64,000 nt of DNA from Isurus oxyrinchus (Eukaryota), in the NCBI GenBank assembly GCA_026770705.1, contig JANJGN010000301.1, positions 496,001-560,000 on the forward strand. Reading direction: 5' to 3'. The notes beneath the pieces are model-generated. The model ran no database searches. It had not been told where the DNA came from and was given only the letters and a program-made list of their open reading frames with translations. Below, piece by piece: positions 1,136 through 47,640 of the stretch; the stretch's first letter is position 1, and each line of letters opens with the position of its first letter. A program made the position numbers and the translations under genes.

Positions 1136-1355
1136 GTGTCTGAAAGCATACAGACAGAAACAGGGCTAATCTGTAGACGAGTTACACATTCGCCTGTCAC
1201 AGCTCAATGTTTCAAATCTTTGACTAGTGCGAGCAAACGGCACGGAAATTATTCACCATGGGGACATCATTCGCTGATCTTCACAGGCAAATCTCTCAGA
1301 TCTTTTACCATTGAGGCCAGACAGGCACTGAGCCGATATACGACGGTGATGGTGG
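1136..1355 (+). pseudogene. Possible highly decayed V-domain relic
   Basis: Acceptor TGTGTAG|GT; TFAC, then GAC TAG TGC GAG CAA (W-Y-x-Q-like), FTG..FTI, and ATA TAC GAC GGT (YYC-like); needs several mutations and frameshifts. Confidence 0.25.
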
Positions 1356-2224
1356 AGGCGGCGGCGGAAGGAGGGGGTTTCACTCACCGTCACCGAACAT
1401 TGTTCAGGTTTTAAACACTCGGTATAAAGTGTGGGGCTGATGCACCGTGGAGCAGGCGGCACTCGCGTGCACAGGGACAATGTTCAGATCTTCCTTTCAA
1501 TCGCTGCCATTGCACGATTCAATAATTTTAACCCGCTCTTCTCTTTTCTGCTTCCTGCCCGGATTTGTTAACTCGATTTATTTATATCATTTCTGCTTTT
1601 ACTTATGCTTCTTTATCTCCGTCTCTCACTTCTGTTTACAATCCACAGGATCCCCCGCTGCCATGCGGTGAGAAATTCTCCGTCTATTTACTGAATTCGC
1701 TGGACTTTCTTTATATGAACAGCTGGGTTTGGGCGGCTGAGAGGAGTGAGGTGCGGGGAGTCCCCTAGAGGTTCGGGGGTTGGGGGTGTCCTGTGGGGGG
1801 AGTTGGAGTCTGAGAGGTGGGGGGACTTCCTGGGAGTTCGGGGGTGTGGAAGGAGACTCGTGGGCGTCGGTGTGGCTCTGTACAAAGTTACCCAGAAGCT
1901 AGAAGTGGTTTTAATTCTAACTTTTCCTGGGCAACTCTTGATGTCGGACAGTCGGAACCATTCGAGGTTTGCAATGTAAATTGTATTTTCTGTTTGTTCC
2001 CAGTACAGAGCAATTGCCCATGGGAAGTTTCCACTTCCCGGAGAATTGCCGTGTAAACCTTACCTGGGAACTCCAGGCGGGGTGTTCCCCGGCGCATCTT
2101 CGGTGTATCCTCCACTTACACGGCCTTGGATCTCGGAGGTCATGGCCCAGCAGAATGTTACGGTTTTCTTGCTCCGCCTGAATCTGACACTATGGCGAAT
2201 ATTTGCCCTTGTTTCCTGGTGTTT

Positions 2225-2240
2225 GAGCGCCCTCTGCTGA
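2225..2240 (-). promoter_or_regulatory. CTCF-type motif TCAGCAGAGGGCGCTC
   Basis: Matches the CCASYAGRKGGCRS core except at position 1; ~25 bp 3' of a decayed V RSS. Confidence 0.65.
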
Positions 2241-2302
2241 GTATTAACTGAGCTGCTCGTTCTGGCATTTTGAGCGGGATCCGCCGTATCTCAGCCGCAG
2301 CA

Positions 2303-2705
2303 TGCGGCTTGTGCACAGAAATACTCGGCTGCGTCGCAGATCAGAGCCTTAGCTCCGTTATCTTGGTAGTTATGTTAGATGTAGAAGAGAATTGATCAAC
2401 TGTCTTCTTGTTTTCATTCTCACCGATCAGATTATTGGGGAGCTGTGGATGTTGCTGGGGCTGCTGACTATACCAGAACAAATGGTTATGGAGCAAAAAT
2501 AAGAATAGCTGGAAAATTCTCCGCAGGTCTGACAGCATCTGCGGAGAGGAATACAGTTAACGTTTCGAGTCCATACGACTCTTTGTATGGTTATGGAGAT
2601 TTGTTTTCAAGATGCATATCACGTGGTGTTACAGGCATCATTTCAGTTTCGGCATCATTTCAGCAACCGATCCGATCACTGTGTGTGGATGGCTCCATCC
2701 TAACC
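2303..2705 (-). pseudogene. TCR V-type (beta-like) V-exon pseudogene, split by a retroelement fragment
   Basis: After removing the insert: ICILKTNLHNHLFWYSQQPQQHPQL...FSS...KITELRL / DAAEYFCAQ (YFC at 2315-2323); decayed RSS with heptamer 2296-2302, 23-bp spacer, nonamer CAAAATGCC 2264-2272. Confidence 0.75.
2494..2586. mobile_element. Short Penelope terminal-repeat fragment with 12-bp TSD
   Basis: ATGGTTATGGAG duplicated at 2482-2493 and 2587-2598; same GCTGGAAAA..CAGGTCTGACAGCATCTG motif as the ends of the Penelope copies. Confidence 0.8.
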
Positions 2706-2857
2706 TAAAGTAGTTGGGTAGATGTCATCATTGTCAGGGTCATCATCACCATTATTTCAAGTAGCTTCATCAGCGGCAGCATCACCTTACAATTAATAAC
2801 ATGTGGATTACAACAGTCAGGGGGAGAACGGATTTTTTCTGGGAAGGAAATACTTAC

Positions 2858-2904
2858 TAAGAAGTGATATAATGACGAGGACCGGGTGTGATGTAATTCC
2901 CCAT
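2858..2904 (-). pseudogene. Leader exon of the 2303-2705 V pseudogene (1-nt frameshift)
   Basis: ATG(G)GGAATT... reads MGITSHPVLVIISLL if one G is removed; followed by a GTAAGT donor (phase 1). Confidence 0.6.
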
Positions 2905-3523: not shown

Positions 3524-3537
3524 GCGCCACCTGGTGG
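3524..3537 (-). promoter_or_regulatory. Consensus CTCF motif CCACCAGGTGGCGC
   Basis: Perfect core match ~45 bp 3' of the V pseudogene nonamer. Confidence 0.75.
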
Positions 3538-3618
3538 CCGAATTTAATGAATCTTATTTTCTCTGATCTCACAAAACACGGCAATGGTGCGAGTTGCCCC
3601 GAGGCCTTTCTCACAGAG

Positions 3619-3911
3619 GGTCTCAGCACATAGTAATACACGGGGTTGTCAGCGACCTGAAGCCCAGTCAAGGTAGAAGCAGCTATATTATTGGGTATTT
3701 TTTCGAATGACTGAAAAGCGACCTTTAATGTTCTTTCCACAAGAATGTGCCCGTATTTCGAAAGCTGGAGCCGGGTTCTGGTTCTAACGATGAAGCTGCA
3801 AAAATTAATTCACGTCGGAAATTGAATAGATGCAATTTATGCTCATCGAGATTCTTTCCAGTTGTTGGGCTTCTGTTGACCACTGTCCGACTGAACCTCC
3901 GGAACTCACTC
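3619..3911 (-). pseudogene. TCR alpha/delta-type V pseudogene with decayed 23-RSS
   Basis: Acceptor TTCTGCAG|GA; GVSSGGSVGQWSTEAQQLERISMSINCIYSISDVN*FLQLHR*...GRFS /fs/ ...TLTGLQVADNPVYYYVLR; heptamer CTCTGTG 3612-3618, 23-bp spacer, nonamer ACCATTGCC 3580-3588. Confidence 0.85.
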
Positions 3912-3959
3912 CTGCAGAAATTATTTCATGGTTGACCATGGAAATATAATGAACAGCAG

Positions 3960-4220: not shown

Positions 4221-4284
4221 GTGCCTGAAAAATGCTGTTCCACATTTTCACCTTTACGATTCACTGCTCCATAATTTGCCCCAG

Positions 4285-4590
4285 GCCCTTTATTCCATTT
4301 GTGTCTGTCTGATTTCAGTCCTTCCCGATTTTCTGGATCATTCCAATTCCTTGGCTGTTCACAACTGACGAGCTGAACGTCACCAAGTACAACCTGCAGA
4401 TATCCCTGCGGTGCTGATGATCCTTTTCTGGTGATGTTGAATCTTCATCTCAAAGTTAGAAAGCGGTTTCATGACTGTGATGAGAAACGGGGATTATAAC
4501 ATCTGCAACATGCGGCCTTTTCAAGTACAACAAAACACTCAGCATATCCTCAACCAAATTACTTTAATCGCAGCAGAAACATAGCAGATG
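4285..4590 (+). pseudogene. Decayed V-like relic, inverted paralog of 45686-45955
   Basis: Colinear DNA similarity to the reverse complement of 45686-45955; KYNKTLSISSTKLL*S resembles V FR3. Confidence 0.4.
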
Positions 4591-4771: not shown

Positions 4772-6212
4772 ATTTAAAGCAGAAAACTGTGGATGCTGGA
4801 AATCCAAAACAAAAACAAAAATACCTGGAAAAACTCAGCAGGTCTGGCAGCATCTGTGGAGAGGAACACAGTGAACGTTTCGAGTCCGAATGACCCTTTA
4901 ACAGAACTAAGTAAAAATAGAAAAGAGGTGAAATATAAGCTGGTTTAGGGGGTGGGGGGCGGTGGCGTGGGGGGGTTGGACAAGAAGAGCTGGATAGAGG
5001 GCCAGCGATCGGTGGAGATAACCAAAATATGTCACAGACAGAAGGACAAAGAGGTTTTGAAGGGAGTGATATTATCTTAAGGAATGTGCTATTTAAGGGT
5101 AGAAAGCAGGACAAGCAAGGTACATATATCCCTAGTGGGGGTGGGGTAGGGGGAATGGATCGAAATAGGCTAAAAGGTAGAGATAAAATAATGGATGGAA
5201 ATACACTTAAAATAATGGAAATAGGTGGGAAAAGAAAAATCTATATAAATTATTCGAAAAAAACAAAAAGGAGGGGGAAAATCGGAAAGGGGGTGGGGAT
5301 GGAGAAAGAGTTCATGGTATAAAATTGTTGAACTCAATATTCAGTCCAGAAAGCTGTAAAGTGCCTAGTCGGAAGATTAGGTGCTGTTCCTCCACTTTGT
5401 GTTGAGCTTCACTGGAACAATGCAGCAAGCCAAGGGCGGACATATGGGCATGAGAGCAGGGTGGAGTGTTGAAATGGTTAACGAGAGGGAGGTCTGTGTA
5501 ATACTTGCGGACAGACCAAAGGTGTTCTGCAAAGTGGTCACCCAGTCTGCGTTTGGTTTCTCCAATGTAGAGGAAACCGCATTGGGAGCAGCGAATGCAG
5601 TAGTCTAAATTGAGGGAATTGCAAGTGAAATGCTGCTTCACTTGAAAGGAGTGTTTGGGCCCTTGGACACTGAGGAGAGGGGAATTAAAGGGGCAGGTGT
5701 TGTACCTTCTGCTATTGCATGGGAAGGTGCTGTGGGAGGGGGTTGAGGTCTAGGGAGTGATGAAGGAGTGGACGAGGGTGTCCCGGAGGGAACAATCCCT
5801 AAGGAATTCCGCCAGTGGGGGAGAAGGGAAGATGTGGCATCATGCTGGAGTTGGCGGACATGGTGGAGGATGATCCTTTGAATGCGGATGCTGGTGGGAT
5901 GATAAGTGAGGACAAGGGGGACCCTATCATGTTTCTGGGAGGGAGAAGAAGATGTGAGGGCGGATGGGCGGGAGATGGGCCGGACACGGTTGAGGGCCCT
6001 GTCAACTACCGTGGGTGGAAAACCTCCATTAAGGAAGAAGGAGGAGATGTCAGAGGAACTGTTTTTGAAAGTGGCATCATCAGAACAGATGCGACTGAGG
6101 AGAAGGAATTGAGAGAATGGGATGGAGTCCTTACAGGAAGCGGGGTGTGAGGAGCTGTAGTCGAGGTAGCTGTGGGAGTTGGTAGGCTTGTAATGGATAT
6201 TGGTGGATAGTC
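4772..6212 (-). mobile_element. Penelope-like retroelement (GIY-YIG endonuclease end)
   Basis: ORF 5312-5641 CIRCSQCGFLYIGETKRRLGDHFAEH...LGTLQLSGLNIEF is typical of the Penelope GIY-YIG domain; terminal repeat at 4772-4920. Confidence 0.9.
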
Positions 6213-7781: not shown

Positions 7782-7851
7782 ATTGATAGTTCCAAACCTT
7801 CAACTTTCCCATACAATCGATGGCTTGCAACTGAATGATGTTTCTCACTGC
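7782..7851 (+). pseudogene. TCR alpha/delta-like V FR3 fragment
   Basis: IDSSKPSTF /fs/ TIDGLQLNDVSHC resembles the SKSxTLTISGLQLxDSAVYYC pattern. Confidence 0.4.
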
Positions 7852-8520: not shown

Positions 8521-9459
8521 AATATATATATATATATTCATTTTTTCCATTTTATGAAGTATAGATGCAAAATGAAAAGTGTTGGATTGAGCCAATAAGT
8601 CATAGAAATTTAGAATGAACCCGTGCTCCCAGCTGGGAAGGAGGTCATTCAGTTCCTTGGGATTGTACCAGCATTTAAAAAAATATATCGAATTTATTTC
8701 ATGCACTCTCACCACCCCCACTGCCCATTCCGCAGCCCCCTCCACCCCATCCCCCACAACCCACCCACCCCACGAACATGCTGTTTCCCCATAGCCCAGC
8801 AATTTATGCCCATTGGAGATCATGTCTTCGTTGATAATGTATCAGACTCTGTCCAGTTGTCTCACTAAAATTGCTCTGGAGCATGGGGCCTTTTATATTA
8901 TCTAAAGCTGTTTTTTTACCTATTATTTCACTACATCATACCCGAGGATTTGGAAGACATTGGGGCGAATGATGAATGTAATGGGGTAAGAAGGAATAAT
9001 GTGACAACAGAAATAGTGTGGAACTTACTGGAAAGCAGAAAGTTCTTCATTCCTTTCCAAGCAAGGGAAATAATAAATCGGGATTTTAAAACTGAGTAAA
9101 TTTATGTCAGATATAGGTAGTATCTCTTCCAAACTTATCACACCCTCAACGTTTATGTCAGGAGCTTCTATTTAATGCTGAGCGAAGCACTTAACACTAA
9201 AACGCAGAGACTGGTGTGTATATGCTCACCATCCTTGGAATAATTTAGTCCATTTTCCAACAGAATTCTCGGAACAGAGGTATTCCTTTGTAAGGGAATG
9301 CTCAGTGTATTCTCAATCAATGTTAACAACATTAAACGAACAGCAAATACATTTTCAATAAAATAAAATCTGGAACATAATAGGTAACAACGGTTATTTA
9401 TCTTTGTGGACTTCACTTGTCAGTAAATATGATGCGTTCGCTCACACACACACATTTCA

Positions 9460-9785
9460 GTTTAAGATCCCATCTTTCCTACCTCGGAGGCTCTGTAGCA
9501 CCTGCAGAATCGAAGAAAATCACCACCACCACATTTCAGGTGGTTCCATGAAGAAAAAATCTCTCCCCACTTCACACTGGTTCAGTTGGTCACTAAAGCT
9601 CCCATCATTCCCACAATGTGCGCCTTGGTCCACATTCTTCGGTTGAAACAAGATCGTCAAGAATTAATCAATAGGAATTGAGACACTTTGCTCTTCTCGT
9701 GACCTTAAAGTGCACAAATCTGCCACAGTTGCAACCATAAGTATTAGGAGTTCGCTCAGGTGGTGATGAGCCGATACATCAGTAG
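9460..9785 (+). pseudogene. Possible IgL-like V relic
   Basis: LGGSV / TCRIEEN / RWFHEEK / ATISIRS..GDE motifs in order, but W-to-FR3 spacing is longer than normal. Confidence 0.3.
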
Positions 9786-9789
9786 AAGT

Positions 9790-11050
9790 GGTTTCTTGAT
9801 AAATTAAGCCGTCATGGATCTGTTAAGGGAAAATCATGTTTAACTAACTTGACTTTTTTGATGACGTAGCAGCGATGGTTGATGAGGATAATGCTTCTGA
9901 CGTGGTTTACATGGTCTCCAAAAGACATTTGATAAAATGCCGCACAACAGACTTGTGAGCAAAGTTGGACCTCACTGGAATAAAATGGACGGTAACATCA
10001 TGGATTGGGAACTGGCTGAGTGCCAGGAAACAAAGAGCGTTTGTTTTTCGGACTTGGGGAAGGATTATAATGAAGTTCCCCAACGTTCAGTGCTACAACG
10101 CCTACTTTTCATAATATTTATTCATAAACTGGGCCTTGGTGTACAGGGCACAATGTCAAAATATACGGACGATGCGAAATGTGGAAGCATTGCGGGCCAT
10201 GAGGAGGATAGTGTAGAACTTCAAAAAGACATCGAGAGGTTGGTGGAAAGGGCGGACAAGTGACAGATGAAATTTTGGTGGGAAGAACGCAGACAGACAG
10301 TATAAAGGAAAGGGTGTGATTCCAAAGGGGCTGCAGGAGCCGAGTGACCTGGGTGTTAATGTGTATAAATCATTGAAGGTGGCAGGACAAGTTCAAAGAG
10401 CGCGATTAATAAATCATGCAACATCCTGAGCTTTATTAACAGAGGAAAGGCGTATACAAGCAAAGAGGTTATGTTAAACGTGTGTGGCACACTGGTTAGG
10501 CCTCAACTGGAGAATTGCATCCAATTCCGGGCACTACATTTTTGCAAGAATTTTAAAGCATGAGCGAGGGCACAGGAAAGATTAATGGAATTTGTTCCAG
10601 GGATGACGAACTCCAGTTATGTATAAAGAGTGGAGCAGTTGACTTTAATCTCGTTTGAGGAGAGAAATTTTAGAGGAGATTTGATAGATGTATTAAAATC
10701 ATGAAAGGTCTGTGCAGAGTAGATCGGGAGAAATTGTTCCCATTGGTGGAAGGATTGAGAACCAGACGGTTCAGGTTTAAAATAATCTGGAGAAGAAGCA
10801 ATAGAAACAAAAGGAAAAACATTTCACGCAGTGAGTGGTTAGGATCTGGAATGCACTGCCTGACAGTGTGGTGGATTGAGGGACAATTGATGCTTTCAAA
10901 TCGAAACAGGATCCTGATCTGAAAAGAAAAAAGATGCTGGACTACGGAGAGAGCTGTGGCGCAAGGTCAATTACTCCTTCAGAGGGTTAGCACAGACAGG
11001 AGTGGCCGAATGGCATCCTCCTGTGCTGTAAGAATTCTATGATACTATCA
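9790..11050 (+). mobile_element. CR1 LINE 3' portion (RT), decayed
   Basis: PHNRLVSKV, VPQRSVL, SKYTDDAK (FADD), ELQKDIERL; CR1-type 3' end. Confidence 0.9.
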
Positions 11051-11199: not shown

Positions 11200-12810
11200 T
11201 CATATTCAACGTGACCTTTGTCTGTTTTTTTACACTCAGTGATGTGTCTGATCATATTGCAACAGGTTGTGTCTCAGTTGTTTCTATAATAGCTCAACCT
11301 CAGTCAATATACACGACAAAGTCCATGTTACACTATACATTCTCTCAGTTATCTTGGCTGACATGACAATAGTCCATATCTCAGTTGTTACTGCACTGGT
11401 ACTTGTCTCTACTTAGACGAAACCAGAACATGTTCCTGTTTACATGACACGAGGCTCTGTCTTGGTTATTGCACTACTAGACTCTGCCACGTTTATACTA
11501 AACTAGGGGATGCCTTGGCTAACGCTGCATCAGTCTATGTCTCTGTTTATATCACACGATGCCCTGTCACTGTTATTATTGTATAATACCGTGCCTCTCT
11601 CTTATTGCTGCAATTGCCCACATCTCTGCTTATATTAATTCAGGTCCTATGTTGGTAGTTATTGCACTATGCTCTGTCTCAGCTTATATTAGACAAGGCC
11701 CTGTATCAGATGAAACTACAGCAGATCCCGTGTCAGTTTCCTTTCACTAGATCCTGCCTCAGTTATTACTGAACTAGACCATGTGGTGTTCATATTACAC
11801 AAGACACTGTCTGAATTATTATTGTACTCGGCACTGCCTCACTTTTTACTCCACTACATCATGCCTCTGTTTATATTACACTAGATCACCTTTTTGCTTA
11901 TATTTTGTTAGACCCTATTTCAGTTAATATAGCACTCGACCTTGTGTCAGTTTATGTTACATTAGACTCCTTCTCAGATAATATTACACTGGAGCCCGTC
12001 TCGGTTTATATTACACTAGACCACGTCTTTGCTTCCATTACAATAGACCCTGTCTCAGTTTATATTACAATAGACCCTGTCTCAGTTTATATTACATGAG
12101 ACCCTTATTCCGTTTATATTACACTAGGCATTGAATCTGTTTATATTAAAATAGGCTCTGTCAATGTTATTTCTGTGTAGACCATGTCTCTGTTTATACT
12201 ACACAAGACCAAGTCTGTTATTACTGCACTAGACCCTGGCTCAATAATTGCTGATACTAGGCCCAGCCTTCGTTTGAATTACTGTAGATGCTGTACCAAT
12301 AATTGGTGCACTCGGCCCTGTCTCAGTATTACTGCACCAGAGCCTGATTTTGTTTATATTGAAATGGATTATGTCTATGATAATATTACACCAGTTCCTG
12401 CCTCAGTTGTTTCAATGCTCGGCCTCGTCTCAGCTGGCCCTGAATTCGTCCGTGGCTCTGGTTGTATTACGTGTGGAAAAGTCTCAGTTATTACTGCTCT
12501 CGGCCCTGTGTCTGTAAAAGCAACGCTAAACCCTGTCTTAGTTGCTGCTGCACTAGTCCATACATCTGCTTTTATTACACTCGCCCTGTCCCTATTTTTA
12601 TTCCACAAGATCATGTTTTTTGTTTATCTTACATCAGAGAGAGTCTGAGTTAATATTGCACCAGACCCTGTCTAGGATGTTATTAATCCATGTGCCGGAT
12701 CAATCATTACTGTTCTCGCCCCGAGAGATGATTAATATCAATTGACCCAGTGCTTAGTGCGCTAACCCTGCCTCAGTTATTTCTACGCTGGGCCATGTCT
12801 CTGTGATTAC
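11200..12810 (-). repeat. 27-bp satellite array (opposite orientation to the main array)
   Basis: Units CTAGACCCTGTCTCAGTTTATATTACA. Confidence 0.85.
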
Positions 12811-13919
12811 TGCAACTGTGAGTTGGAGAGATAATATTATACACAAAGATGTTGAGGTGGGTATTGTTCCCTGGCGTTGGCCTAAAACGGGCGGGATTGG
12901 ATGGCCCGTTCTTTGCAGCACCTGATAGTTATTTTTATTTAGTTTTCGTCAAAGAAATTATAGATCAGATATGGTCAGTTAAGATTAATGATGACCTTTA
13001 CCTGGATGTTTCAATATTTAATTTTATTTCATTCAAACTGTCACTGCGGATGATTTAGTGCTGCAAATATTTATTGATATCATGTTTCGTTGTGTACTTT
13101 TGCTTAGAAAGTGATGTCATATTGACACTTTTGTCACTAAGTCAAGCATGTTTATTGAATGTTTCTTCTCTCTGTCTGAGGCAGCGTCTAACTCATTGAA
13201 CCTCCTCTCTCTCTCTCTCAACCTTTCTTTCTCTCTCTCTCTCTCTATCTCTCTCCACCCACCATCTAACTCCCACCCCCCACAGCCCCGCTCTCTCTCT
13301 CTCTCTCTCTGAGACAGTCCCTTATTCATTTTGAATCTCCTGATATCTAATAACACTCTTTGGAGGATTTTTTTTCGCAATTTCTCTTCATTTCTCCCAG
13401 TGAAAACTTTCAGTCCACTCCTGCCTTCAGCGATTGTGTTCAAATCCAAAACTATGCATTTATGTAAATTGTAGATTGTTTAATACTGTAAGTATTTATT
13501 GATAACCAGTCTGTTGTGTGCATTTGTTTATAAAGTGATGCCAGACTGACGATTTCGTTTCTAAGGTGCTTTATCTGTCTCCGGTGATCAGTTTGAAAGC
13601 GGAGTAAATCACATCCAGAAGAACCAGCAGGTTATTAACAAATGATCACCTCAATATCTCTCAGAAGCTCCTGATAATCTCGAATGTGTGATGATTTGTG
13701 CAAGTGATGGCAAAAATCAAACTTTACCTACACCTGACATGAGACTAATACACCTGTAATTCTCCGATTTATTATTCCTGTTGATGGGAAAGATTGAAAC
13801 TCCTGCTGCTCTCCAGAGATTTTCATTATTTTTATTTCACTTTTTTAACTGTTATCTTCACAAATTCCACCACAACCATTCGAATCATGTTTGAATAGAT
13901 TGGTTTAACTGCAGGTTGT

Positions 13920-15554: not shown

Positions 15555-15870
15555 AGAGCTGACCATTTAATAACGCCCAGTGCTCACAGTGAGAGTTTAT
15601 GTCAGCCTTTCTGTTCTTTTATCCATTATTTCCTCACACTCAGGAGGAGGAATTAAAAGCAGAGAAACTCTGGACAGTTTCTCCATCCAGCAAAGGACGG
15701 GGTCCTGGGACATTGTTGCTGCTTTGACCTTCCCGCCCTCTCCAAAAATACAAAACATCTCCCTCCTTGGATTTGCAAAGGGAATTCTGACTGCCGGGCC
15801 CGGGCCAGACTGGGGCCTGGTCCAATAATAATCAGAGGCCGGCTCCAGTGTGTCAGTAACAAAGGAAATC
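15555..15870 (-). pseudogene. Possible IgL/TCR-like V relic
   Basis: Acceptor CTTTATTTCAG; LLDQAP..PG..CKSKEGDV, QQQCPRTP, ADINSHCEHW. Confidence 0.35.
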
Positions 15871-16079: not shown

Positions 16080-16320
16080 GAGGACAATCATGGCGGACTG
16101 CAGAGATTTCTGATATCTGAGGTGTCAATGCTGCATCTGTCAGAGGAACAGAAAATAATCTGCTCCTTCTCATTCTTACCGACAGTTCTCCATTTACACA
16201 GACACGCAGGGGCCGGACCTGGCAGCTTGTAGAAACCAATGTTTAAATCTTCAGCTTGAGGCACATGATGACTGAAAGGATTAAACACCAAAACCTCACC
16301 AGAGGAAAAATCAGAGCCGA
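16080..16320 (-). pseudogene. V-set Ig-domain relic, paralog of 17716-18020
   Basis: EVLVFNPFSHHVPQAEDLNIG...CKW...TDAALT...HDC; ~125 bp of clear inverted DNA similarity to 17716-17840. Confidence 0.35.
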
Positions 16321-17219: not shown

Positions 17220-17490
17220 ACTCTGCCCTGACTCTGTGGCCAGATATAGGCCGCCTTGACAGATGTTCTCACCAGATTGTGGCCCCTGGATTTATTTTCT
17301 GCTCAGAAGTGAGATGTGCGGTTTGGAACCGGCAGCAGAGAAACAGGAAGTTGTGTTACCTGAGAATGAAACAGCAGGCGTCAGTTTCATGTTATCACCG
17401 TGAACAGTCTTCCTGCCTGTGAGGGTGAACTCACTCTGACAGCATCAAGAACAACCACACAGATTGCTGCCGGTCTCAGCATTGCATTCA
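17220..17490 (+). pseudogene. Possible TCR-like V relic
   Basis: DSALTLWP...C...VWNRQQRNRKLCYL...TL/SIKNN..HC. Confidence 0.3.
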
Positions 17491-17715: not shown

Positions 17716-18020
17716 GCCACTGAATTTTCCTCTGAAGAGGTATTGGGGCTTAATCTTTTCAGTGATAATGTGCCTTAAGCAAAAGATTTAAACATTGGTT
17801 CCTCGAAGCTGCCAGATCCGGCCCTTGTGAGTCTGTGTAAGTGAGTAAAGTGAAGTCTGAGAGAGAGAAGAGAGGTTAACTGTTTTAGGTGCAGTCTGAG
17901 ACAGAGGAAGAGAGGGAAGAAGTTCAGTGAGTCATTTGAAAGATGCATTTTCCTTGACAACGGAATGGCCAGCTTGACATTACTTTCCAGAGCACTCAAG
18001 ACAACGCATTACCGATAAAT
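17716..18020 (+). pseudogene. V-set Ig-domain relic (B7/butyrophilin-like GxASLTL motif)
   Basis: EVLGLNLFSDNVP*AKDLNIG...CK*V...LDNGMASLTL. Confidence 0.35.
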
Positions 18021-20130: not shown

Positions 20131-20419
20131 TTGTCAGATAAATCCTAATATAATACAAACGGAAGCTTTGTGCAATGCAACAGCAGCTCAGGAATTGTCA
20201 CTTGCAGTTTATATAGAGGCATGGCTATGTGCATTAATAAATGAAGCATCATATAATGTAATAGAGATAGAGACATAGTCTAGTGCAGTAATAACTGAGA
20301 AAAGGTCAATTGTAGTGTATATAGAAGCATGGTCCAGTGCATTAATAAGTTAAACTGCAGATAGCATTATATACACTGATACAATGCTGAGAGAAAGATT
20401 AAAGGAGAAATGGTAAGTA

Positions 20420-28974: not shown

Positions 28975-29130
28975 CAGAATATAATTCAAAAATTGGCTTT
29001 CTTGTAGGAGACAGAGGATGATGACAGAAGGATGCTTTAGTTACTGGAAGCCAGTGTCCAGTGGCGTAGCACAGGGATCTGTGCTGGGTCCCCTATTATT
29101 TGTCATTTATATAAACGACATAGATGGCTA
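28975..29130 (+). mobile_element. CR1 fragment, duplicate of the 5' end of the 33765 CR1
   Basis: Same CCAGTGTCCAGTGG..CACAGGGATCTGTGCTGGGTCCCC segment and same satellite junction. Confidence 0.85.
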
Positions 29131-32100
29131 GATTAATAGAAACTGAGACAGGTTCTAGTGCAGTGTTTACTGATACATGGTCCTGATCAATATAAACTCA
29201 GACAATGTCCAGTGCAGTCATTACTAATACAAGGTCTAGATCAATAGAATCTGAGACAGGGTCCAGTTCAATGAAAACTAAAGTAAGGTCAAGATTAATA
29301 TAAACTCAGACAATGTCCAGTGCAGTGATGGCTGATACAGGGTCTGGATCAATATAAACTGAAACAGTGTCCAGTGCAGTGATTACCGAAACAGGGTCTA
29401 AATTAATATAAACTGAGACAGAGCCTAGTGTGATGATTACTAATATAGGGTCTAGACGATAAAAACAGAGGAAGGGCATAGTGCAGTGATTACTGATACA
29501 GGCTCTAGATTAATGTAAACTGAGACAGAGCCTAGTGCAGTGATTACTGATACAGGGCCGAGGTAAATATAATGCAGGACAGAGGCTAGTGCATTGATTA
29601 ATGATACTGGATCAGGGTCAATATAAACTGAGACAGTGTCCATTGAAGTAATTACTGATACATTGCCTAAATTAATATGAACTGAGGCAGGCCATATTGC
29701 AGTAATTACTGAACAAGGCTCTAGGGCTAATATAAACTGAGACAGGGCCTAGTGCAGTGATTACTGATACATGGTCTAGATCAATATAAACTGAGGCAGT
29801 GTCCAGTAGAGTGATTACTGATACAGGGTCTTGATTAATATAAACTGAGATGGGGTCTAGTGCAGTGATTCCTGATACAGGCTGTAGCTTGACAGAAGCT
29901 GACACTGGGCATTGTGCAGTGATTACTGATCCATGGTCTGGATAACTATAAACTGGGACAGGGGCTACTGCAGTGATTACTGTTACAGTGTCTGGACTAA
30001 AATAAGTGGAAGCATTCTCTAGATCTGTTATTACTGATACAGTTTCTGGACTTATTTAAACTGAGATAAGGTCTAGTGCAGTGATTACTGATACAGGATA
30101 TGGATTGATATAAACTGATGCTGGATCCAGTGCAGTGATTACTGGCACAGCGTCCAGATCAATATAAACAGAGATAGGGACTAGTGCAGTAATTACTGAT
30201 ACACGGTTGACATAAATATAAACTGGGATAGGGGCCAGTGCAGTGATTACTGGTATAGGGTCTGGACTCATGTAAATGGAGACAGGGTCCAGCAAAGTTA
30301 TTACTGATACAGGATCTGGATTGATATAAACTAAGGCAGGCCATAGTGCAGTGACTAGTGTCGCAGGGCCAAGATAAATAAAATCGAGGACAGCGGCTAG
30401 TGCAGTGATTACTGATACGGGGTCTAGAACAATATAAAGTGAGGGTGGTCATTGCACTGATTATTATGCAGAGTTTGATTTATTTAAGATGAGACAGGCC
30501 CTAATGCCAGGATTACTGATACAGGGTCTGGATCAATATAAACTGAAACAGTGTCCAGTGCAGTCATTATTGATACAGGCTCTGGATGATAAAAACTGAA
30601 GCAGGGCATAGTGCAGTGATTACTGGTACAGGGTCGAGGTAAATATAAACTAGGACAGAGGCTAGTGCATTGATTAATGATACAGGATCAATATCAATAT
30701 AAACTGAGACAGCGTCCATTGCACTGATTACTGATGCATGGCTTAAATTAATATGAACTGAGTCAGGGCCTAGTGCAGCGATTACTGATTTAGGGTCTAG
30801 ATTAATATGAACTGAGGCAGGCCATATTTCAGTGATTACTAACACAGGGACTAGATTAACATAAACTAGGACAGGGGATAGTGCAGTGATTAATGATACA
30901 GGATCAGGGTCAATATAAACTGAGACAGTGTCCATTGAAGTGATTACAGTTACAGGGTGTACATCAGTATAAAATGAGACAGTGCCTAGGGCAGTGATTA
31001 CTGATCTTAGGTCTTGATAAAAATAAAACTAAGATAGTGATTAGTGCAGTGATTACTGATACATGGTCTTGATTAATATGAACTGAGGCATGGCCTAGTG
31101 CAGTGATGACTGATTTAGGGTCTAGATTGATATCAACTAAAATAGGGAAAATTGCAGTAATTGCTGATACAGGGTTGAGATTGACATAAATTGAGGCAGG
31201 GCATATTGCAGTGATTACTGATAGAGGGTATAGGTTAATAGAAACTGAGAGAGGGCCAAGTGCAGTGATTATAGATTCAGGGTGCAGATTATTATAACCA
31301 GAACAGGGACAAGTGCAGTGATTACTGAAACAGGGCCTTGATTAATATAAACTGAGACAGGCTCTTGTACAGTAATTACTGATACACAATCTGAACTAAC
31401 ATAACCTGAGACAGGGTCTGGTGCAGTGTTCACTGACATAGGGCCCAGATAAATATAACTGGGACAGGGGCTGAGGCAGTGATTACTACTGCAGGGACTA
31501 AATTAATGTAAACTGAGATAGGCCTAGTGCAGTGATTACTGATACAGGGCCTAGATTGATAAACAAAATGACACCTGGCATATTGCACAGCATCTAGCTT
31601 AATATAAACTTCGGCAGAACCGAGTGCAGTAATTACTGACACATGATCTCAATCAATATGAACTTAGACAATGTCCAGTGCAGCGATTACTGATGCAGAG
31701 CTAGATTAATATAAGCTGAGGCAGGGCCTCATGCAGTGATAATTGATACAGGGTCTAGATTAATAGAAACAGAGAGAGGGCCAAGTGCACTGAATACTGA
31801 TAGAGGGTCTAAATTGATATAAACTGAGGTAGGCCACATTGCTGTAATTACTGATACAGTGTCCCGATCAATATAAACTGAGATAGGTCCAAGTGCAGTG
31901 ATTACCGATACAGGGTCTGGATTAATATAAAGTGAGACAGGGCCTTGTGCAGTCATTACTGATACAAGATCTAGATTAATATAACCTGAGACGGGGCTTA
32001 TTGCAATTATTACTGATAGATGGTCTGGACTAATTTAAACTGAGGCAGGCCAAAGTGCAGTGATGACTGATACAGGATCTAGATTAATATAAACTGAGAC

Positions 32101-33764
32101 AGGGTCTAGCACAGTGTTTATTAATACAGTGTCTCAATCAGCATAACTCAGACAATGTTGAGGGCAGTGATTACTGATACAGGATCCAGATTAATGTAAA
32201 CTGAGGCATGCTCTAGTGTACTGATTACAGGCACAGGATCTAGCTTAATATAAACTGAGACAGGTTCTTGTGCAGTAATTACTGATACAGGGTCTCAATC
32301 AATATAAACTCAGACAATGTCCAGTGCAGTGATTACTGATACAGGGCCAAGATAAATATGAACTGAGGCAGGGCCTACTGCAGTGATTACTGATACCGGG
32401 CCAAGATAAATATGAACTGAGGCAGGGCCTACTGCAGTGATTACTGATACAGGGTCTCGGTTAATAGAAACTGAGAGAGGGCCAAGTGCAGTGATTATAG
32501 ATTCAGTGTGCAGTTTATTATAACCAGAACAGGGACGAGTGCAGTGATTACTGAAAAAGGGGCTTGATTAATATAAACTGAGACAGACTCTTGTACAGTA
32601 ATTACTGATACAAGGTCTGGACTAACATAAACTGAGAAAGGGCCTGGTGAAGTGTTAATTGATACAGGGCCTAGATAAGTATAACTGAGATGAGGCAGTG
32701 ATAACTGATACAGGGTCTAGATTGCTAAAAAAAAACCTGAGGCAGGACATAGTGCAGGGATTACTGATAACGGGCTGACATTAATATAAACTCAGAGAGG
32801 TTCAAGTGCAGTGATTACTGGTATAAGGTCCAAATTGATATAAAATGACTTGCGTCTCGTGTAGTGATTACTGGTATAGGGTCTGGATTGATATAAACTG
32901 AGACAAGGCCTGGTGCCGTGATTTGTGTTGCAGGGTTGGATGCATATAAAATGGGACAGGGCCTAGTGCAGTGATTACAGGCACAGGTTTTAGATTAATA
33001 TAAACTGAGAAACAGTGCAGTGCAGTGCTTTTAGGTTTAGGGTGCAAATTATTAATACCAGAACAGGGTCGAGTGCAATGTTTACTGCAACTGGTTCTTG
33101 GTTAATATAAACTGAGACAGGCTCTTGTGCAGTAATTACTGATGCAGGGTCTGAACCAACATAAACTGAGACAGGGCCTGGTGAAATGTTCACTGGTACA
33201 GGGCCTAGATAAATAAAACTGAGACAGGAACTCTTGCAGTGATGACTGCTGCAGGGACTAAATTAATATAAACTGAGGCTGGATCTATTGCAATGATTAC
33301 TGATAAAGGGACTGGGCTAATATAAAGTGAGACAGAGTTTAGTGCAGATATAACTGATGTGGGGTCAGGATCAATATAAACTGAGACAGGGTCTGTTGCA
33401 ATGATTACTGATACAGGGTCTAGATCAAAGTCAACTGAGACAATGTCAATTGCAGTGATTTCTGATCCAGGGTCTTGATTGATAAAAACTGAGACAGGGC
33501 CTAGTGCAGTAAGTAATGTTAAGGGTCTAGATTAATATAAACTGAGAGAGCCTCAAGTACAGAGATTACAGATACAGGATCTAGATTATTATATGCTGAG
33601 ACAGATCTAGTGCAGAGTTTACTGATACATGGTCTAGCTCAATATAAACTGTGGCAGGGCATAGTGCAGTGATTACTGATGCTCTAAAGTAACGTAAGGA
33701 AGACAAGGTCTAGTACGGTGATTACAGATACAGGGTCTAGATTGATAAAAACTGAGGCAGGGAA

Positions 33765-34850
33765 GAATATAATTCTAAAATTGGATTAGTTGTAGGAGAC
33801 AGAGGGTGATGACAGAAAGACGCTTTAGTTACTGGGAGCCAGTGTCCAGTGGTGTACCACAGGGATCTGTGCTGGGTCCCCGATTATTTGTTATTTATAT
33901 AAACAAAAGTGGATGCCTACATGTGGGGTAGGATTAGTAAGTTTACGGAGGATACAGAGATTGGCCGGTTGGTTAACAGTGATGTTGAGTGTTTTGGGCT
34001 ACAGGAAGATATAGATGGAATGGTCAAATGGGCAGATAAGTGGCAGATGGAATTTAGCACTGAAAAGTGCGAGGTGATACACCTTGGAAGGAGTAATTTG
34101 ACTATGAATGGGATGACACTAGGAAGTTCTGAGGAACAAAGGGACCTTGGCATGTGTGTCCATAGGTCTCTGAAGGCAGAGGGGCATCTTAGTGGGGTGG
34201 TGAAAAAGGCATATGGGTCACTTGCCTTTATCAATTGAGGCATAGATTACAAAAGTAGGAAGGCCATGTTAGACTTGTATAGAACCTTGGTGAGGTCACA
34301 GCTTGAGTACCATATGCAGTTCTGGTCGCCACATTATAGGAAGGATGTGATGCACTGAAGAGGGTGCAGAGGAGATTCACCAGGATGTTGCCCGGTATGA
34401 AACATTTAAGTTATGAAGTGAGGTTGGATAGACTTGGGTTGTTTTCATTGGAGCAGAGAAGACTGAGGGGAGACCTGATTGAAGCGTACAAGATTCTGAG
34501 GTGTGTGGACAGGGTGAATAGGGAGCAGCTGTTGCCCTTAGTTGAAGGGTCAGTCACAAGGAGACATAAGTTCAAGGTGAGGGGCAGGAGGTTTAGGATG
34601 CTTTTGAGGAAAAACGTTTTTACCCAGAGGGTGGTGATGGTCTGGAATGCGCTGCCTGGGATGGTGGTGGAGGTGGGTTGCTTTACATCCTTTAAAAAGT
34701 ACTTGGTTGAGCACTTGGCACGTCATAACATTCAAGGCTATGGGCCAAGTGCTGGTAAATGGGATTAGGCAGGTAGGTCAGGTGCTTTTCACGTGTCGGT
34801 GCAGACTCGATGGGCCAAAGGGCCTCTTCTGCACTGTGTGATTCTGTGAT
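33765..34850 (+). mobile_element. CR1 LINE 3' portion
   Basis: GVPQGSVLGP; ORFs 33909-34238 and 34364-34768 are CR1 RT C-terminus. Confidence 0.93.
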
Positions 34851-36414
34851 AATATAAACTGATTACTGATACAGGTCTAGATCAATATCAAGGGAGACAG
34901 CGTCTCGTGCAGTGATTACTGGCAGAATCTAGATTAATACAAACTGTGACAGGGCCGAGTGCTGTGATTACTGACACAGGGACGAGATTATTATAAACTA
35001 GGACAGGGGCTAGTGCAGGAATTAATGATACAGGATCAGGATCAATATAAACTGAGGCAGTGTCCTTTCCAATGATTACTGTTAGAGGGTCTGGACTAAT
35101 ATAAACTGAATCAGGGCCTAGAGCAGTCATTACTAATACAGGGTCAAGATTAATAGAAACTGAGACAGAGCCTAGTGCAGTGGTTACTGATGCAGGGTGT
35201 AGATTAATATAAACTCAATGTCCAGTGCAGAGATGACTGACAGAGGGTCTAGATTAATGTAAACTGAGACAGGGTCCACTGCAGCGATTAATGATACAGG
35301 GTCTAAATTAATATAAACTGAGACAGTGTCTAGTGCAGTGATTCCTGATATATGGTCTGGACTAGAATAAACTGAGACAGGGCCAAGTGCAAGAATTACT
35401 TCATCATTGACGCCCATATCCCAAGAATGAATTAAAACACTGCAAAATACTGCATGTTTGGGAAATCTAAGGCAGAGCAAAAAATAACCACTCAGCAGGT
35501 CAGTGGGCATCAACAGAGAGAGAAACAGGTCAAACGTTCAGGCCGATGACAGGTGCAAAATCTCCCTTAGTACAAATCTATAGAGCAGGACTGTTCTCCC
35601 CACTATCCTAGTCCAGTATTCATTCTTCAACTAAAATCACATATTATCTTATCATTTTTTGCAGCTCTATTCGTGGGAGCTTGCTGTGCACAAATCACCG
35701 GATGGATTTCCAATATTACAGCAGTGACTAAACTTCAACAAATGTACATCAACGAATTTCAAGGGCTTTAGGACGTCCTGGGGTCACAAGCTGCGTTCTA
35801 TAAATGTAAATTCTTCCTAAATGTTAACATTTTAAAATGCTAGTTGTGATATGTTGAAAACTCTAAGATTAATATGATTATAGGTCGCTCCTGTGGCTGC
35901 TGTTTTAAATTATCCATTTTTAATCAGTTAAATCTTCCAACAAATTGACATTGAGTGTAATCCCAGCCTGTTCAAATATTCATCATTGATTGTGACAGTA
36001 GCACTTTCAGAATTGAATTATTAATTTAAATGTATTTTTAATTATTTGAAATAAATAACATCTGTTCTAATGGATGTTGAAAATGTTTCTAGTAATTTTG
36101 TACCAACTGTCAATATTCTTAAAATAAACCCTTGTTTTGAGTTGAAACCAATCAATAAGTGTCTGTGTTTATCTGGTTTTGCTGCCATGAACACTTCATT
36201 GAAACCAATGAGGCGTTTATGTAAATAAACACAGAAATAGAAGTCCCAGATTAGATTCTGGATACACAAAAGCACAGCAAATATTTCCCCATCAATAGAG
36301 CACAGAAATAGAGTCAAACATGCAAATACATCAACAGATTTCAGTAACAACTTTTTTTGGGCATTTTTAAAATCAGTTATATGAGAATTATGTCACGACG
36401 ATATCTATTTTCAG

Positions 36415-36640
36415 AATTAAGTAAGATTCCCACTGATCATGAAATATAATGTCAAGGCAAATGTGTTTGTAGGGATGTCCTGTATCCTCGCTCTCTCTGT
36501 GTCTCTTTCTCCTCTCTGGTACTTTGTCTTGTCTCTCCACCATGGGTCACTGTCTTTACTCCACAACATGATGTCAATGTCTAGCCAATATATTTTCTCA
36601 GCCCGATTCATACACTTCAAACTATATTGATCAAATGAAA
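36415..36640 (-). pseudogene. IgL-like V relic
   Basis: ORF track: SLKCMNRAEKIYW...KYQRGERDTER..QDIPTNTFALTL, followed by a D-S-G-x-Y-like stretch. Confidence 0.45.
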
Positions 36641-37640: not shown

Positions 37641-39005
37641 AGACCCTGTCTTGATATTGCGTTCGACCGTGACCCTGTCTCTGTTTATATTACAGTTGAC
37701 CCTGCCTCTGTTTGTATTGCACTAGGCCCTGTCCCTGTTTATATTGCATCTGACATGTATCTGTTTATATTGCACTAGATGGTGTCTCTGTTTACATTGC
37801 ACTTGGCCCTGCCCGTGTTTATATGACACTCAACATGTCTCCTTATATTCGACATGCCTCTGTTTATATTGCACTAGGCCCTGCCCTGGTTTATATTACA
37901 CTAGACCCTGTTTCTGTTTATGTTGCACTGATCCCTATTTTGGTTTACATTACATTAGACCGTGTCTCTGTTTATATTATACTAGGCTCTGCCCCTGTTT
38001 GTATTACACTTGATATGTCAGTGTTTATATTACACTCGGCATGTCTCTGTTAATATTATACTCGACATGCCTTTGTTTATTTTGCACTAGACGCTGTATC
38101 TGTTTATATTACATTAGATCCGGTCTCTGTTTATATTGCACTAGGTCATGCCACTGTTTATATTAAACTGGGCCCTGTATGTTTATAATACACTAGACTC
38201 TGTCTCTATTTATATTACACTGGACCCCGTTTCTGTTTATATTACTCTAGATCCTGTCTTTGCTTATATTAAACAAGGCCTTGTCTCTGTTTATATTATG
38301 ATTGACCTGTCTCTGTATATATTCATCTAGAACTGTCTCTGTATTTCAGTAGCCACTGTCTCAGTTCTGTGCTAGATCATATCTGTATTTAAATTACATT
38401 AGACCCTGCCTCTGTTATTACTGCACTACACATGTGCCATAATGTGGAAATTGGCTGGGGTGGAAATAGTGAAGATAAGGCAGCAAGATGGTGGGAACAA
38501 TTAACATGGGGGCCTGTTTAGATGTTATGACTTGTCCTCCCTGCATCCCAGATTTGTGTTCATGATCCACAGACCTCTCTTATATTGCAGCTGTTTAAAT
38601 TAAACCATTTAACTCCTATTTTCAGGCTCTAGTGCAATAAAGTAAGGGAATATACTAATGTAATATAAACAGAGGACAATTACATAAATATCTAAGACAG
38701 GACCTAATGTTACAGAAACAGAAACATGGACTAGAACAGTAACAAAGAGACAGGCCCAGTAAAATACTACCAGAGACATGGTAGAGAGCAGCAATAACTG
38801 AGACAGAGTCCAGTGTTACAGAAACAGAAACATGAACTAGAGCAGTAACAATGAGACAGGCCCAGTGTAGTATCAACAGAGGCTTGGTGGAGAGCTGCAA
38901 TACTTAGACAGGATCTAGTATTACAGAAACAGAATCACGGACTAGAGCAGTAACAATGAGACAGGCTGAGTGTAATATTAACAGAGACACGGTGGAGTTC
39001 AGCAA
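37640..39005. repeat. 27-bp satellite, - orientation (37640-38430) then + orientation (38625-39005)
   Basis: Direct inspection. Confidence 0.8.
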
Positions 39006-43056: not shown

Positions 43057-43849
43057 AACTTTGCAATTGTAGCTACTGTGAAAATGTCGCTGTCAGGTTA
43101 GATCTTTGACATTATTGTATCAAGAATCCACTTCCCTAGATGTAATACCACATCGCCTTCTGCGGGAGGTGTCAAAATTTAACAAAATTCAACTAATTAC
43201 AGTTGAATGTGTTTGATTAATGCACGTTAAAGTCAGCACCAGAATAAAGCGGCCCAATTCCTGGTGATGTAACTTTGTTCATCTTGATCAAAGGGAGGGA
43301 TGTTGACCAGGGAGCTGTATAGAGTTGGCGGGAGCTTTAATATCCACCTCAACAAATATAGTCTTGGGAAGAGTTTATTGGTTCATGATACCACCTGATA
43401 GACAGTTAGGGTCATTTTCTTCAATAGTTAAGGGCTATGGAGCCTCCCAGGAAGTCAAGGTGACATCTTAAGTTGAAGCACAAGATGCCATTTTGGTCTG
43501 TGTGTGTATGAGGGAGATTGGGAGGGAGAGAAAGAGCGAGAAGCACATCACATTGTTTGCAACTGAAATTCACGAAGATTCTGGACAACATTCCATCTAT
43601 GAAAGGTCACAGACACACAATGGAAACAAACCCATTTCAGATGTGCTGATTGCTAAGGAGTTCAATCATTATGAGGCAGGCTCTGCCACAAGTGCTGCAC
43701 ATGAAGCTACAAAGTGTCGTTGTGGCTAAGTTTTTTTTCCCGGTGTTGGCCTCAATTTCCAAACCGCTTTAGCCGCTGGTCATCGTGGTGATTCATGCCA
43801 ATCCACAGGAGGTGTCGCCATTTTCCTCAGTTGTCAGTTAGTTACACTC

Positions 43850-44990: not shown

Positions 44991-45134
44991 CTCTGAGTGA
45001 GATATGCCTGTAGATGTTGCAGTCTCACCTGTCGGCTTTGTTTTCAGATAGTGTGGTGATTTTTGTATCATTCACCTCCTGTGGAATGAATCTTATCTTT
45101 CAACAGAGAAGAAGGTCGTAAAGGCGGAGAAAGG

Positions 45135-45345
45135 CAAATAATTATAAACACCAACCTTTATCAATTCCCAAAGGTGAATAATTATATTCAAGAATTATCA
45201 TCAATTCGCAAAGATAAATAAGTATATTCACCAATTAGCATCAATTCACAACGATAAATAATTATATTCACCAATTACCATCAATTCACAAGACAAATAA
45301 TTAAGTTCAGAAATTATCATCCATTCACAAAGATTAATAATTGCA
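45135..45345. repeat. ~39-bp AT-rich minisatellite, about 5 copies
   Basis: AATAATTATATTCACCAATTA.CATCAATTCACAA units. Confidence 0.85.
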
Positions 45346-45529
45346 TGAACCAATCATTTTCAGCATTTTATTCCATTCAAATGTAATTGCGATTCATTTA
45401 ATATCATTAACATTGATTGAGATCGCATTGACCATTCTGTCAGCAATGAATTACATCTGTCCCAGAATTCAGTGGGAAATGGAATTAAATCAGACCGAGG
45501 TTAATGAGCAGCTACCCAGCAGCCTCTGC

Positions 45530-45910
45530 GCTTTATTGACAAGTAATCACCTCATCATCACACAGAAACTCCTGATATGTAACTGGAGTGTGTGAGGATT
45601 TGTAAAGTGATGGTATAAAGAAAACTACCTGGACCTGACTGTAAGTTAATGCGTCTCTCCAGTGAGTAATATATGTTACCTTCACTAATTTGGGTGAAGA
45701 TATGTTGAATGTTTTGTTGTACATGCAAGGACCACATATTTCAAATATTACAATCCTCCATCCTAAACCGAATTATGTACCCGCTTTCTGTCTGAAAGAT
45801 GATGATTTACCATCAGCAGGGAAGAATCATCAGTACTGCAGGGACATCTCCAGCCTTCTCTTGTGACTTTAGCTCGTTAGCCTGGGGATGGAATACATCC
45901 AGAAAATCTG
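45530..45910 (-). pseudogene. Decayed V-like relic(s)
   Basis: Acceptor GTCTCCAG; CSTDDSS..W*..YIIR; NKTFNISSPKL / NIYYSLER; then LQLHIRS..DDE..CQ; paralogous segments at 4285-4562 and 13573-13760. Confidence 0.4.
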
Positions 45911-47337
45911 GAGACACTGAAGGTATTAGACTCATAGAAATAAAATACTGAACCTGCTTCAAGATATTAAGTAGTCATGCACCAAGATGGGAAGGTAGAA
46001 GAGCATTTTTCAGGCGCGCCGATCCATACATCGGTCAACCCATTCATTGATTCCTTAATCAAAATATTCAGGCATCCAACTACCATTCATCCCTCCATTC
46101 TTTGGCAGATGGTTGTGTTGTATTAATGTCACTGGATAAGCAACAAAGACACGAATACAAATCCCACCATAGCAGCTGGTGGAATTTAAATTCAATAATA
46201 AATCTGGGATTGAAAGCTGGTCCAGTGAAGGAAACCGTGAAACCACCATCGATTGTGGAAAAAAACTCATCTGATTCACTAATGTCCTTCAGGAAAGGAA
46301 ATCTGCCACTGTACCTAGTCTGGCCTACATGTGACTCCAGATCCGCAGCAACATGATGGACTCTAACTGCCCTCTGAAATGGCCGAGCAAGGCATTCAGT
46401 TCAAAGGCAGTTAGAGACAGGCAACAAATGCTGGCCTTGCCAATGACTCCCACATCCCGTGAAAGAGTAAAGGGGCAAAAAAATCACACAAATGTATATG
46501 TTTGACTGTTAAAAACATGTGTCCTCTCTCTGAGTCCTCTCTAATAGTCTGTCTGTAATTCTTTCCATCCATCCATCAGACTTTTATGATGTGTTGGAGA
46601 GATCCTCCAATGAGCTATTGTTGCTAACAGGATGTCAGAGAAGCTGGATAACTTTTCTTCCCTGAGAGATGGAAACAGTTCACATAGGTTCACAACTTAA
46701 AAAATAAAACTGACTCCAGTGTTGTTGCTGGGTAGATTTGTTTATAAATAGGCCTTGTTGACAATGCTAAGGGTTTGAAGTTGGCTTGCAGCCAAGCGGC
46801 CACTTCTGAGGAAACAGATCTTTGATTAACTGCACAAACCCCCCAGATGCTTCCTGTAAACAACATCGGACATTCGAGCCTCCCTGACTGCAGCTGGCTG
46901 GCTTGCTTCCAAATACTGTGTGGGTTGGATTAGCCGGGATATGATTGAACAAAATGGTTTTAGCCATTCAAACAATAAATATTTCTGTGGCACACGAAAG
47001 GCACATTTTAAATGGTACTTCATTAAAGGAAATATTTGAATGAATGCCGTGTTCACTGTGAAATTAAACTCGATCAGAAAATATTAAATTCACCACATAT
47101 TACTTAATTTATATTATTTCTAAGTAAAGGGCATTCCAGTTATTAAAGCCGGTTTATTAAGAACTTCATGGAGTGCGAGAGAGCGATGTTGATGGTCTCA
47201 ATCCCCCAGTCTAATGAGCTAAGTAGAATGGAAAAAAATTAAAATAAATTAAATTAAAAGAACATCATAGAATTGTATTGAACCTGCAGGAATTCCTTGA
47301 ATATTCCTCCAGTTGTGCACCTCATTTAGCCTGTGGT

Positions 47338-47640
47338 GTCCCTTAAACCTCATTAGTACCGTGAACTGTACAGTTTACTTTGTGATGATTGCGATTATTT
47401 AACAGTCCCTCTCATAGCTGCCAATGAGTGGAGAAATGATAAGTTCGTGACCAGCTTCAGTGGAAGATAAAACATTTATTCTTGTGATATTGTGTAATAT
47501 GCCGCAAAGTCCTGATATCCTGTGTTCCCAATACCAGTGAATGGTAGACAGCGGGAGGCCAATAAAATTAGCTGCAATGATTTGGATGCTGAAGGATAAC
47601 TTTTCTGATCTCCGTGTCTGTTCTGATTCATTAACTTCTT
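47338..47640 (-). pseudogene. TCR-like V relic head-to-head with the IgM VH
   Basis: SIQI/CS...LSTIHWYWEHRISGLCGIL (47528-47542 = IHWYW); TAC AGT TCA CGG TAC TAA TGA GGT TTA AGG GAC resembles DSARYYCALRD. Confidence 0.55.

Follow-up and report, generated by a model that had tools for sequence, protein, structure and literature searches.

Two decayed V exons in repeat-rich DNA upstream of an IgM minicluster of Isurus oxyrinchus

[quoted passage not shown] Related systems include the VH-type V segments of TCR delta loci (TAILV or VH-delta segments) in nurse shark, frog, birds and monotremes, and the V pseudogenes left by birth-and-death turnover in translocon-type arrays. Here, two V-exon remnants, named relic A and relic B, are described upstream of an IgM heavy-chain minicluster of Isurus oxyrinchus. 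They lie in a stretch of 64 kb (assembly GCA_026770705.1, contig JANJGN010000301.1, positions 496,001 to 560,000 of the forward strand), referred to below as the window, which contains no runs of N. A first-pass annotation had read positions 1136-47640 of this window as a graveyard in which about 13 V relics of non-IgM type lie on both strands, and had offered two explanations, the fossil of an ancestral mixed antigen-receptor complex or an IgM cluster linked to TCR genes.

As in the elasmobranch complex, an IgM minicluster is here accompanied by non-VH V exons outside it; unlike the V exons reported there, both are pseudogenes, a subject absent from that paper's main text. The two relics share with translocon V pseudogenes their stops, frameshifts, transposon insertion, decayed recombination signal sequences (RSSs) and CTCF-type motifs beside the V exon, but their neighbour is a minicluster-type IgH gene, and they are not part of a classical V array of IgH or TCR. 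Similarly, the locus recalls the TAILV and VH-delta systems, where Ig and TCR V segments are mixed in one complex, although those segments are VH-like and functional while the relics are dead and not VH-like. Since non-VH V segments beside TCR-linked IgH clusters are already described in PMC12227049, the core of the first-pass finding is not new: such segments beside a TCR-linked IgM cluster have been known since that publication in 2025.

The 46-kb span is probably repeat-rich intergenic DNA with two orphan non-VH V pseudogenes, most likely the outermost members of a neighbouring V array of TCR alpha/delta type. Only two of the 13 islands claimed to hold V relics are V-like above chance, and these two lie at the far end of the span, about 45 kb from the IgM VH and 1.1 kb from each other. 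Both are on the minus strand, so that the reported distribution over both strands finds no confirmation. The features at this end of the window are as follows.

2227-2240, minus strand: CTCF-core motif (1 mismatch), located 67 nt beyond relic A's heptamer-like remnant
2309-2487, minus strand: relic A, a V exon reduced to its 3' two-thirds, from framework region (FR) 2 through Cys104 (direct reading and profiles)
2494-2584: dispersed repeat of 91 nt, the 3' tail of a shark retroelement, adjoining FR2 of relic A
2585-2904, minus strand: claimed leader and FR1 of relic A, unsupported
3524-3537, minus strand: perfect CTCF-core motif (0 mismatches), located 75 nt beyond relic B's heptamer-like remnant
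3580-3618, minus strand: degenerate remnant resembling an RSS with a 23-nt spacer (23-RSS), behind relic B (direct reading)
3619-3911, minus strand: relic B, a full-length V-exon pseudogene (direct reading and profiles)

Relic A reads H-L-F-W-Y-S-Q-Q-P-Q-Q-H-P-Q-L, D-Q-F-S-S and T-K-I-T, and then, beyond a frame change (between 2356 and 2347) and an in-frame TGA stop (2343-2341), D-A-A-E-Y-F-C-A-Q. Trp41 (codon 2475-2473) and the D-A-A-E-Y-F-C string ending in Cys104 (codon 2317-2315) are present and Cys23 is lost. The N-terminal half is missing because the retroelement repeat at 2494-2584, which has six further copies in the window at 78-85% identity, cuts it off. On the 3' side there is a weak heptamer-like CACAAGC (2313-2307, 4/7 match), and no nonamer was found behind it at 12 or 23 nt. 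A leader and FR1 for relic A, claimed beyond the repeat, are unsupported: an ATG is present at 2904-2902, but its frame is not hydrophobic and the 'intron' would be just 19 nt, and the sole profile match to FR1 (2799-2853, score 9.2) is at noise level.

Relic B begins at a phase 1 acceptor (AG, 3913-3912) and reads S-M-S-I-N-C-I-Y-S, followed by a decayed W-Y-R-Q (now L-H-R-stop), K-G-R-F-S-V, and L-T-G-L-Q-V-A-D-N-P-V-Y-Y, a 2-nt slip and C-A-E. Cys23 (codon 3834-3832) and Y-Y-(shift)-C with Cys104 (codon 3630-3628) are retained and Trp41 is mutated. Three stops (3807-3805, 3786-3784 and 3690-3688) and two frame changes (near 3692 and the slip at 3632-3631) interrupt the exon. Measured against a reference RSS of CACAGTG, a spacer of 12 or 23 nt and ACAAAAACC, placed directly after Cys104 plus 2-4 codons, relic B carries a heptamer-like CTCTGTG (5/7), a 23-nt spacer and a nonamer-like ACCATTGCC (5/9) directly after Cys104+3. 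This remnant fails an RSS scan that requires CAC, in which the true VH, D1, D2 and JH alike show good RSSs; its heptamer-23-nonamer layout is consistent with a putative RSS in decay.

For the evaluation of these readings, the 13 claimed islands were translated in six frames and landmarks were searched over the whole window. Local profiles were built from 15 VH domains (shark and other vertebrates) and nine light-chain V domains, the latter cut from two proteins (one a kappa V array of hake, the other a lambda array of a lizard), with no TCR V included. They were run with hmmsearch on the six-frame translation, with stops as X and 30 shuffles, and with a frameshift-aware profile-to-DNA aligner on both strands, for which 36 shuffles and the reversed window served as controls. 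An ad hoc counter of landmark chains did not separate real from shuffled sequence, and the profile aligner was used instead. In addition, joined readings of each relic were made by hand, with X at each break. The sensitivity of the approach was estimated with simulated VH-type relics carrying three indels, which were detected in 93% of cases at 30% substitution and in 33% at 40%.

The strict pattern D-x-[AGS]-x-Y-x-C occurs at only two sites when the 64 kb are read in all six frames, namely the true VH and 2315-2335 (minus strand) in relic A, each preceded on the same strand by W-x-x-Q 120-200 nt upstream. This pairing of landmarks, found twice in the real sequence, had a mean of 0.02 per window in 200 local shuffles and never reached two. 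In the frameshift-aware V-profile scan the scores were 200.8 for VH, 33.4 for relic A, 29.2 for a Cmu domain and 27.5 for relic B, with everything else at 22 or less; the shuffle maxima ranged from 18.3 to 24.8 and the reversed-window maximum was 27.9. Relic A is clearly significant because its score exceeds every shuffle and the reversed control, and it rises to 42.1 with the light-chain profile. Furthermore, in single-frame hmmsearch on the six-frame translation the shuffle maxima were exceeded only by VH, relic A and one Cmu domain. Relic B scored above all 36 shuffles and is borderline by the frameshift-aware score alone, because of the reversed-window maximum. The joined reading of relic A gave 20.4 bits with the mixed profile, 5.7 with the VH profile and 27.8 with the light-chain profile, the last biased upward since its references had been found with relic A as the query; its scores were matched by 0, 2 and 0 of 1000 permutations, respectively. 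For relic B the corresponding scores were 15.5, 11.9 and 10.9 bits, each matched by 0 of 1000 permutations.

Database searches with independent pieces of both relics returned V domains in correct order and register. A 47-aa piece of relic A matched 113 light-chain V domains in the PDB, all in the FR2-FR3 register (best E 0.02-0.04), and in the Atlas search the ten best named clusters were all V-set (score 0.80). Six representative proteins also matched relic A (two light-chain V arrays and four unrelated repeat proteins), and as all six are boosted by internal repeats their E-values are inflated and they do not count as independent evidence. For relic B, the FR3 piece matched lambda light-chain FR3 in register in the PDB (E 0.1-1.7), the K-G-R-F piece matched starts of FR3 in V domains, and the best partner within the window by tblastn was FR3 of the true VH (E 0.021). 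With FR1 of relic B the Atlas search gave no usable match and the PDB search gave a designed coiled coil alone. A protein homology search with relic pieces yielded no candidate with three 5-residue words in common.

As to the class of these exons, neither relic is VH-like by profile comparison. A six-frame search of the window with the VH profile found the true VH alone, and the VH-profile matches of the joined readings cover FR3 only. Relic A resembles a light-chain V, the closest among comparison sets that are mammalian, teleost and lizard and hold no shark TCR V; because of this composition, closeness to light chains may merely reflect the sets available. Relic B shows the features of a generic V with putative TCR alpha/delta-like hallmarks, namely C-x-Y after Cys23 and K-G-R-F-S-V, which we take to be habits of TRAV and TRDV segments. 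Of the first-pass claim of non-IgM V relics upstream of the IgM cluster, the existence and non-VH type of such relics hold, and the count shrinks to two, the lower bound that the annotation itself had set; its labels of TCR beta/gamma and B7-type V found no support. When the two relic units are aligned as DNA, no similarity remains between them, so that relics A and B come from different V families and are not recent duplicates.

No J-like motif follows Cys104 in either relic, and a constant-domain profile found no constant-domain remnant anywhere in 1-47 kb. The relics are therefore orphan V segments, and neither the remains of whole miniclusters nor non-rearranging VJ exons.

CTCF-type motifs provide a further line of evidence. 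The window holds 3 CTCF-core matches against 0.75 expected, and two of the three lie behind the relics, on the relic strand; no such motif was found behind the functional IgM VH. Motifs in this position may be a sign that both relics once belonged to a V array of translocon type. From the published locus map together with these motifs, we infer that the relics belong to a TCR alpha/delta array. The alternative in the first-pass annotation of an IgM cluster linked to TCR genes agrees with the elasmobranch locus work in PMC12227049.

On this reading, the span upstream of the IgM cluster is ordinary intergenic DNA made of a 54-nt satellite, long interspersed nuclear element (LINE) and Penelope-like debris and simple repeats. 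The two orphan pseudogenes occupy its far end, at 2.3-3.9 kb, and the IgM genes lie on the other strand. The relics are non-VH V exons of the light-chain or TCR alpha-delta kind, most likely the outermost members of a neighbouring translocon-type V array in the elasmobranch antigen-receptor complex, where IgH miniclusters are placed next to TCR alpha/delta V segments and among them. Ordinary birth-and-death turnover of V segments would have given rise to them. Inactivated by stops, frameshifts and RSS decay, plus the retroelement insertion in relic A, they have no coding function.

The relics could instead be what remains of V in light-chain miniclusters (V-J-C), one or two in number and now decayed, outside any TCR alpha/delta array, a reading that we regard as rather unlikely. 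FR2-FR3 of relic A is closest to kappa and lambda V in the PDB and the representative library, the FR3 end of relic B is closest to lambda, and some light-chain loci belong to the same complex according to PMC12227049. However, neither V is followed in the window by a J or constant-domain remnant, and the distance between the relics leaves no room for a C exon. The limited reference sets may also mislead as to light-chain closeness, the C-x-Y and K-G-R-F-S-V of relic B are presumably TRAV/TRDV habits, and the CTCF motifs behind the RSS positions suggest a translocon-type array.

Exons of non-rearranging V-set receptor genes (germline VJ-C1 type) would account for the poor RSSs of both relics. 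This is very improbable, as no F-G-x-G J motif is found after Cys104 and no C1 or transmembrane exon is found nearby, and relic B retains its heptamer-23-nonamer-like layout directly behind the exon.

Several points weigh against the main reading. The frameshift-aware score of relic B is matched by a reversed-control peak, and the joins in its read-through were placed manually. Support for V identity comes from profiles of our own making, built on 15 VH and two light-chain families, and the light-chain score of relic A carries the bias described above. Pfam V-set returned no family for any of the stop-free single pieces of either relic (27-126 aa), a search of low power because the pieces are too short. 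TCR-type relics diverged by more than about 35-40% would escape the profiles, though no positive sign of very old or TCR-specific relics was seen. Moreover, the sequence read is the 64-kb window, so that linkage to TCR genes in its flanks is extrapolated. The silence of Pfam and the reversed-sequence match could even be taken to mean that relics A and B are themselves chance look-alikes and that no V relic exists, which is scarcely credible given that no control reaches relic A, that V domains are matched in order and register by independent pieces of either relic, that the exon length and phase 1 acceptor of relic B are right, and that CTCF motifs co-locate with both.

The remaining eleven islands differ from the two relics. 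Their best frameshift-aware scores on either strand (12.5-17.5) lie within noise, with about 20 noise peaks in the span scoring higher, and the W-Y-x-Q or W-x-x-Q and D-x-A-x-Y-x-C landmarks occur in none of them. Pfam searches with their 20 longest stop-free readings (41-123 aa) returned no Ig-type family at E<=10, and the PDB returned 0 matches at E<=10 for a 108-aa reading (47402-47725) and a 50-aa reading (17295-17444). Six of the eleven form three pairs of dispersed repeat copies.

4285-4590: repeat, not V; partner 45686-46015 with 69-74% identity over 200-343 nt; score 13.4; nothing in Pfam
45530-45910: composite of two repeat pieces, not V; partners 4223-4561, 9138-9408 and 13632-13738; nothing in Pfam
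9460-9785: repeat copy, not V; partner 43215-43471 (E 5e-15); score 13.9
43140-43480: partner copy of 9460-9785, not V (repeat match, profile score and Pfam)
16080-16320: inverted copy of 17720-17843 with 84% identity, not V
17716-18020: inverted partner of 16191-16314, not V
7782-7851, plus strand: 70-nt look-alike of an FR3 end (T-I-x-G-L-Q-x-x-D...C); score 10.5-14.1, in noise; too short to test
15555-15870: no V signal; score 15.9; nothing in Pfam on stop-free pieces of 84-98 aa
17220-17490: no V signal; score 17.5, in noise; 0 PDB matches at E<=10; nothing relevant in Pfam
36415-36640: no V signal; score 14.3; nothing in Pfam
47338-47640, minus strand: no V signal; 108-aa stop-free reading; score 13.8; 0 Pfam families; 0 PDB matches at E<=10

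The repeat copy at 9.1-10.9 kb, which includes 9460-9785, runs into a LINE reverse-transcriptase remnant (9944-10900) that is homologous to 19143-20134, where an RVT_1 trace is found. The island at 47338-47640 had been read as a V relic 'head-to-head with the IgM promoter' and was rejected, as profiles, Pfam and PDB were all silent. By these comparisons, the eleven islands are best taken as transposon fragments or chance look-alikes.

A graveyard of about 13 relics on both strands, as the fossil of an ancestral mixed antigen-receptor complex, is accordingly most improbable. Two of its relics are real, very old ones diverged by more than about 40% would escape the profiles, and to the eye the short string at 7782-7851 is suggestive of FR3. 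On the other hand, the other 11 islands score within noise and hold none of the claimed landmarks, Pfam and PDB give no V match even on stop-free readings of 75-123 aa, and six islands are copies of each other, one of them adjoining the LINE remnant. By its own terms, the first-pass annotation would be refuted if V-set hits surpassed the shuffled controls nowhere but at the two best loci; the frameshift-aware scan with shuffles found V signal at those two loci alone, and the idea of a graveyard over 46 kb comes close to being refuted by its own standard. Nothing calls for a fossil complex, as two pseudogenes at the edge of a V array suffice.

Repeats make up much of the span, and 50% of 1136-47640 has another copy within the window (satellite and retroelement debris). 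Upstream of the IgM cluster, the 54-nt satellite, composed of two 27-nt halves, takes up about 12 kb (21480-35400), and related 27-mer arrays, partly in opposite orientation, flank it on both sides (11860-12210 and 37670-38340). A Penelope-like element is present as two inverted copies (5312-6150 and 21692-22540) that are 76% identical over 792 nt, with a weak trace of a GIY-YIG endonuclease (Pfam E 0.028) at 5312-5638 in the first of them.

The right third of the window carries, on the plus strand, a complete, unjoined and intact shark IgM heavy-chain minicluster.

48390-48437, plus strand: IgM leader
48390-50150, plus strand: IgM V-D-D-J, functional-looking
48555-48875, plus strand: IgM VH (Pfam V-set 3.5e-17), with a 23-RSS at 48870
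49307-49320: D1, RSS spacers of 12 and 22 nt
49692-49704: D2, RSS spacers of 12 and 12
from 50101: JH, preceded by a 23-RSS
62132-63900, plus strand: Cmu exons CH1-CH3 within the window

The segments follow the order VH(23) / (12)D1(22) / (12)D2(12) / (23)JH over 48870-50110. A protein homology search with this VH returned 20 proteins, all VH, and its nearest relative in the protein collection is a VH of Scyliorhinus torazame (86% identity). The J-Cmu intron contains a C/T-rich repeat block (54.7-57.4 kb) followed by a G/A-rich block of 23-nt repeats (57.6-59.5 kb) with GC up to 64% and a GC skew of +0.55, and a 280-nt inverted repeat of 95% identity (60224-60503 / 60702-60981) lies just 5' of the Cmu exons.

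Beyond annotation the significance of these results is small. An over-read has been corrected, with 11 of the 13 'relics' being transposon debris or noise, and two V pseudogenes have been placed on the border of an IgM cluster, as was described in 2025 for the elasmobranch complex. The one thread worth following is whether TCR and IgH territory is functionally separated at the conserved CTCF-type sites behind the dead V segments. The relics, which have lost coding frames and RSSs and still carry intact CTCF-core motifs at nearly equal distances from their RSS remnants (67 and 75 nt), might have been retained as putative architectural elements (loop anchors or insulators), a distinctly doubtful proposal drawn from motif positions. 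Such a reading might place them where the IgM minicluster borders on a NAR-TCR / TCR delta V array, and if true, an architectural role would be relevant to how trans-rearrangement of IgH V segments to TCR delta is allowed or restricted in sharks.

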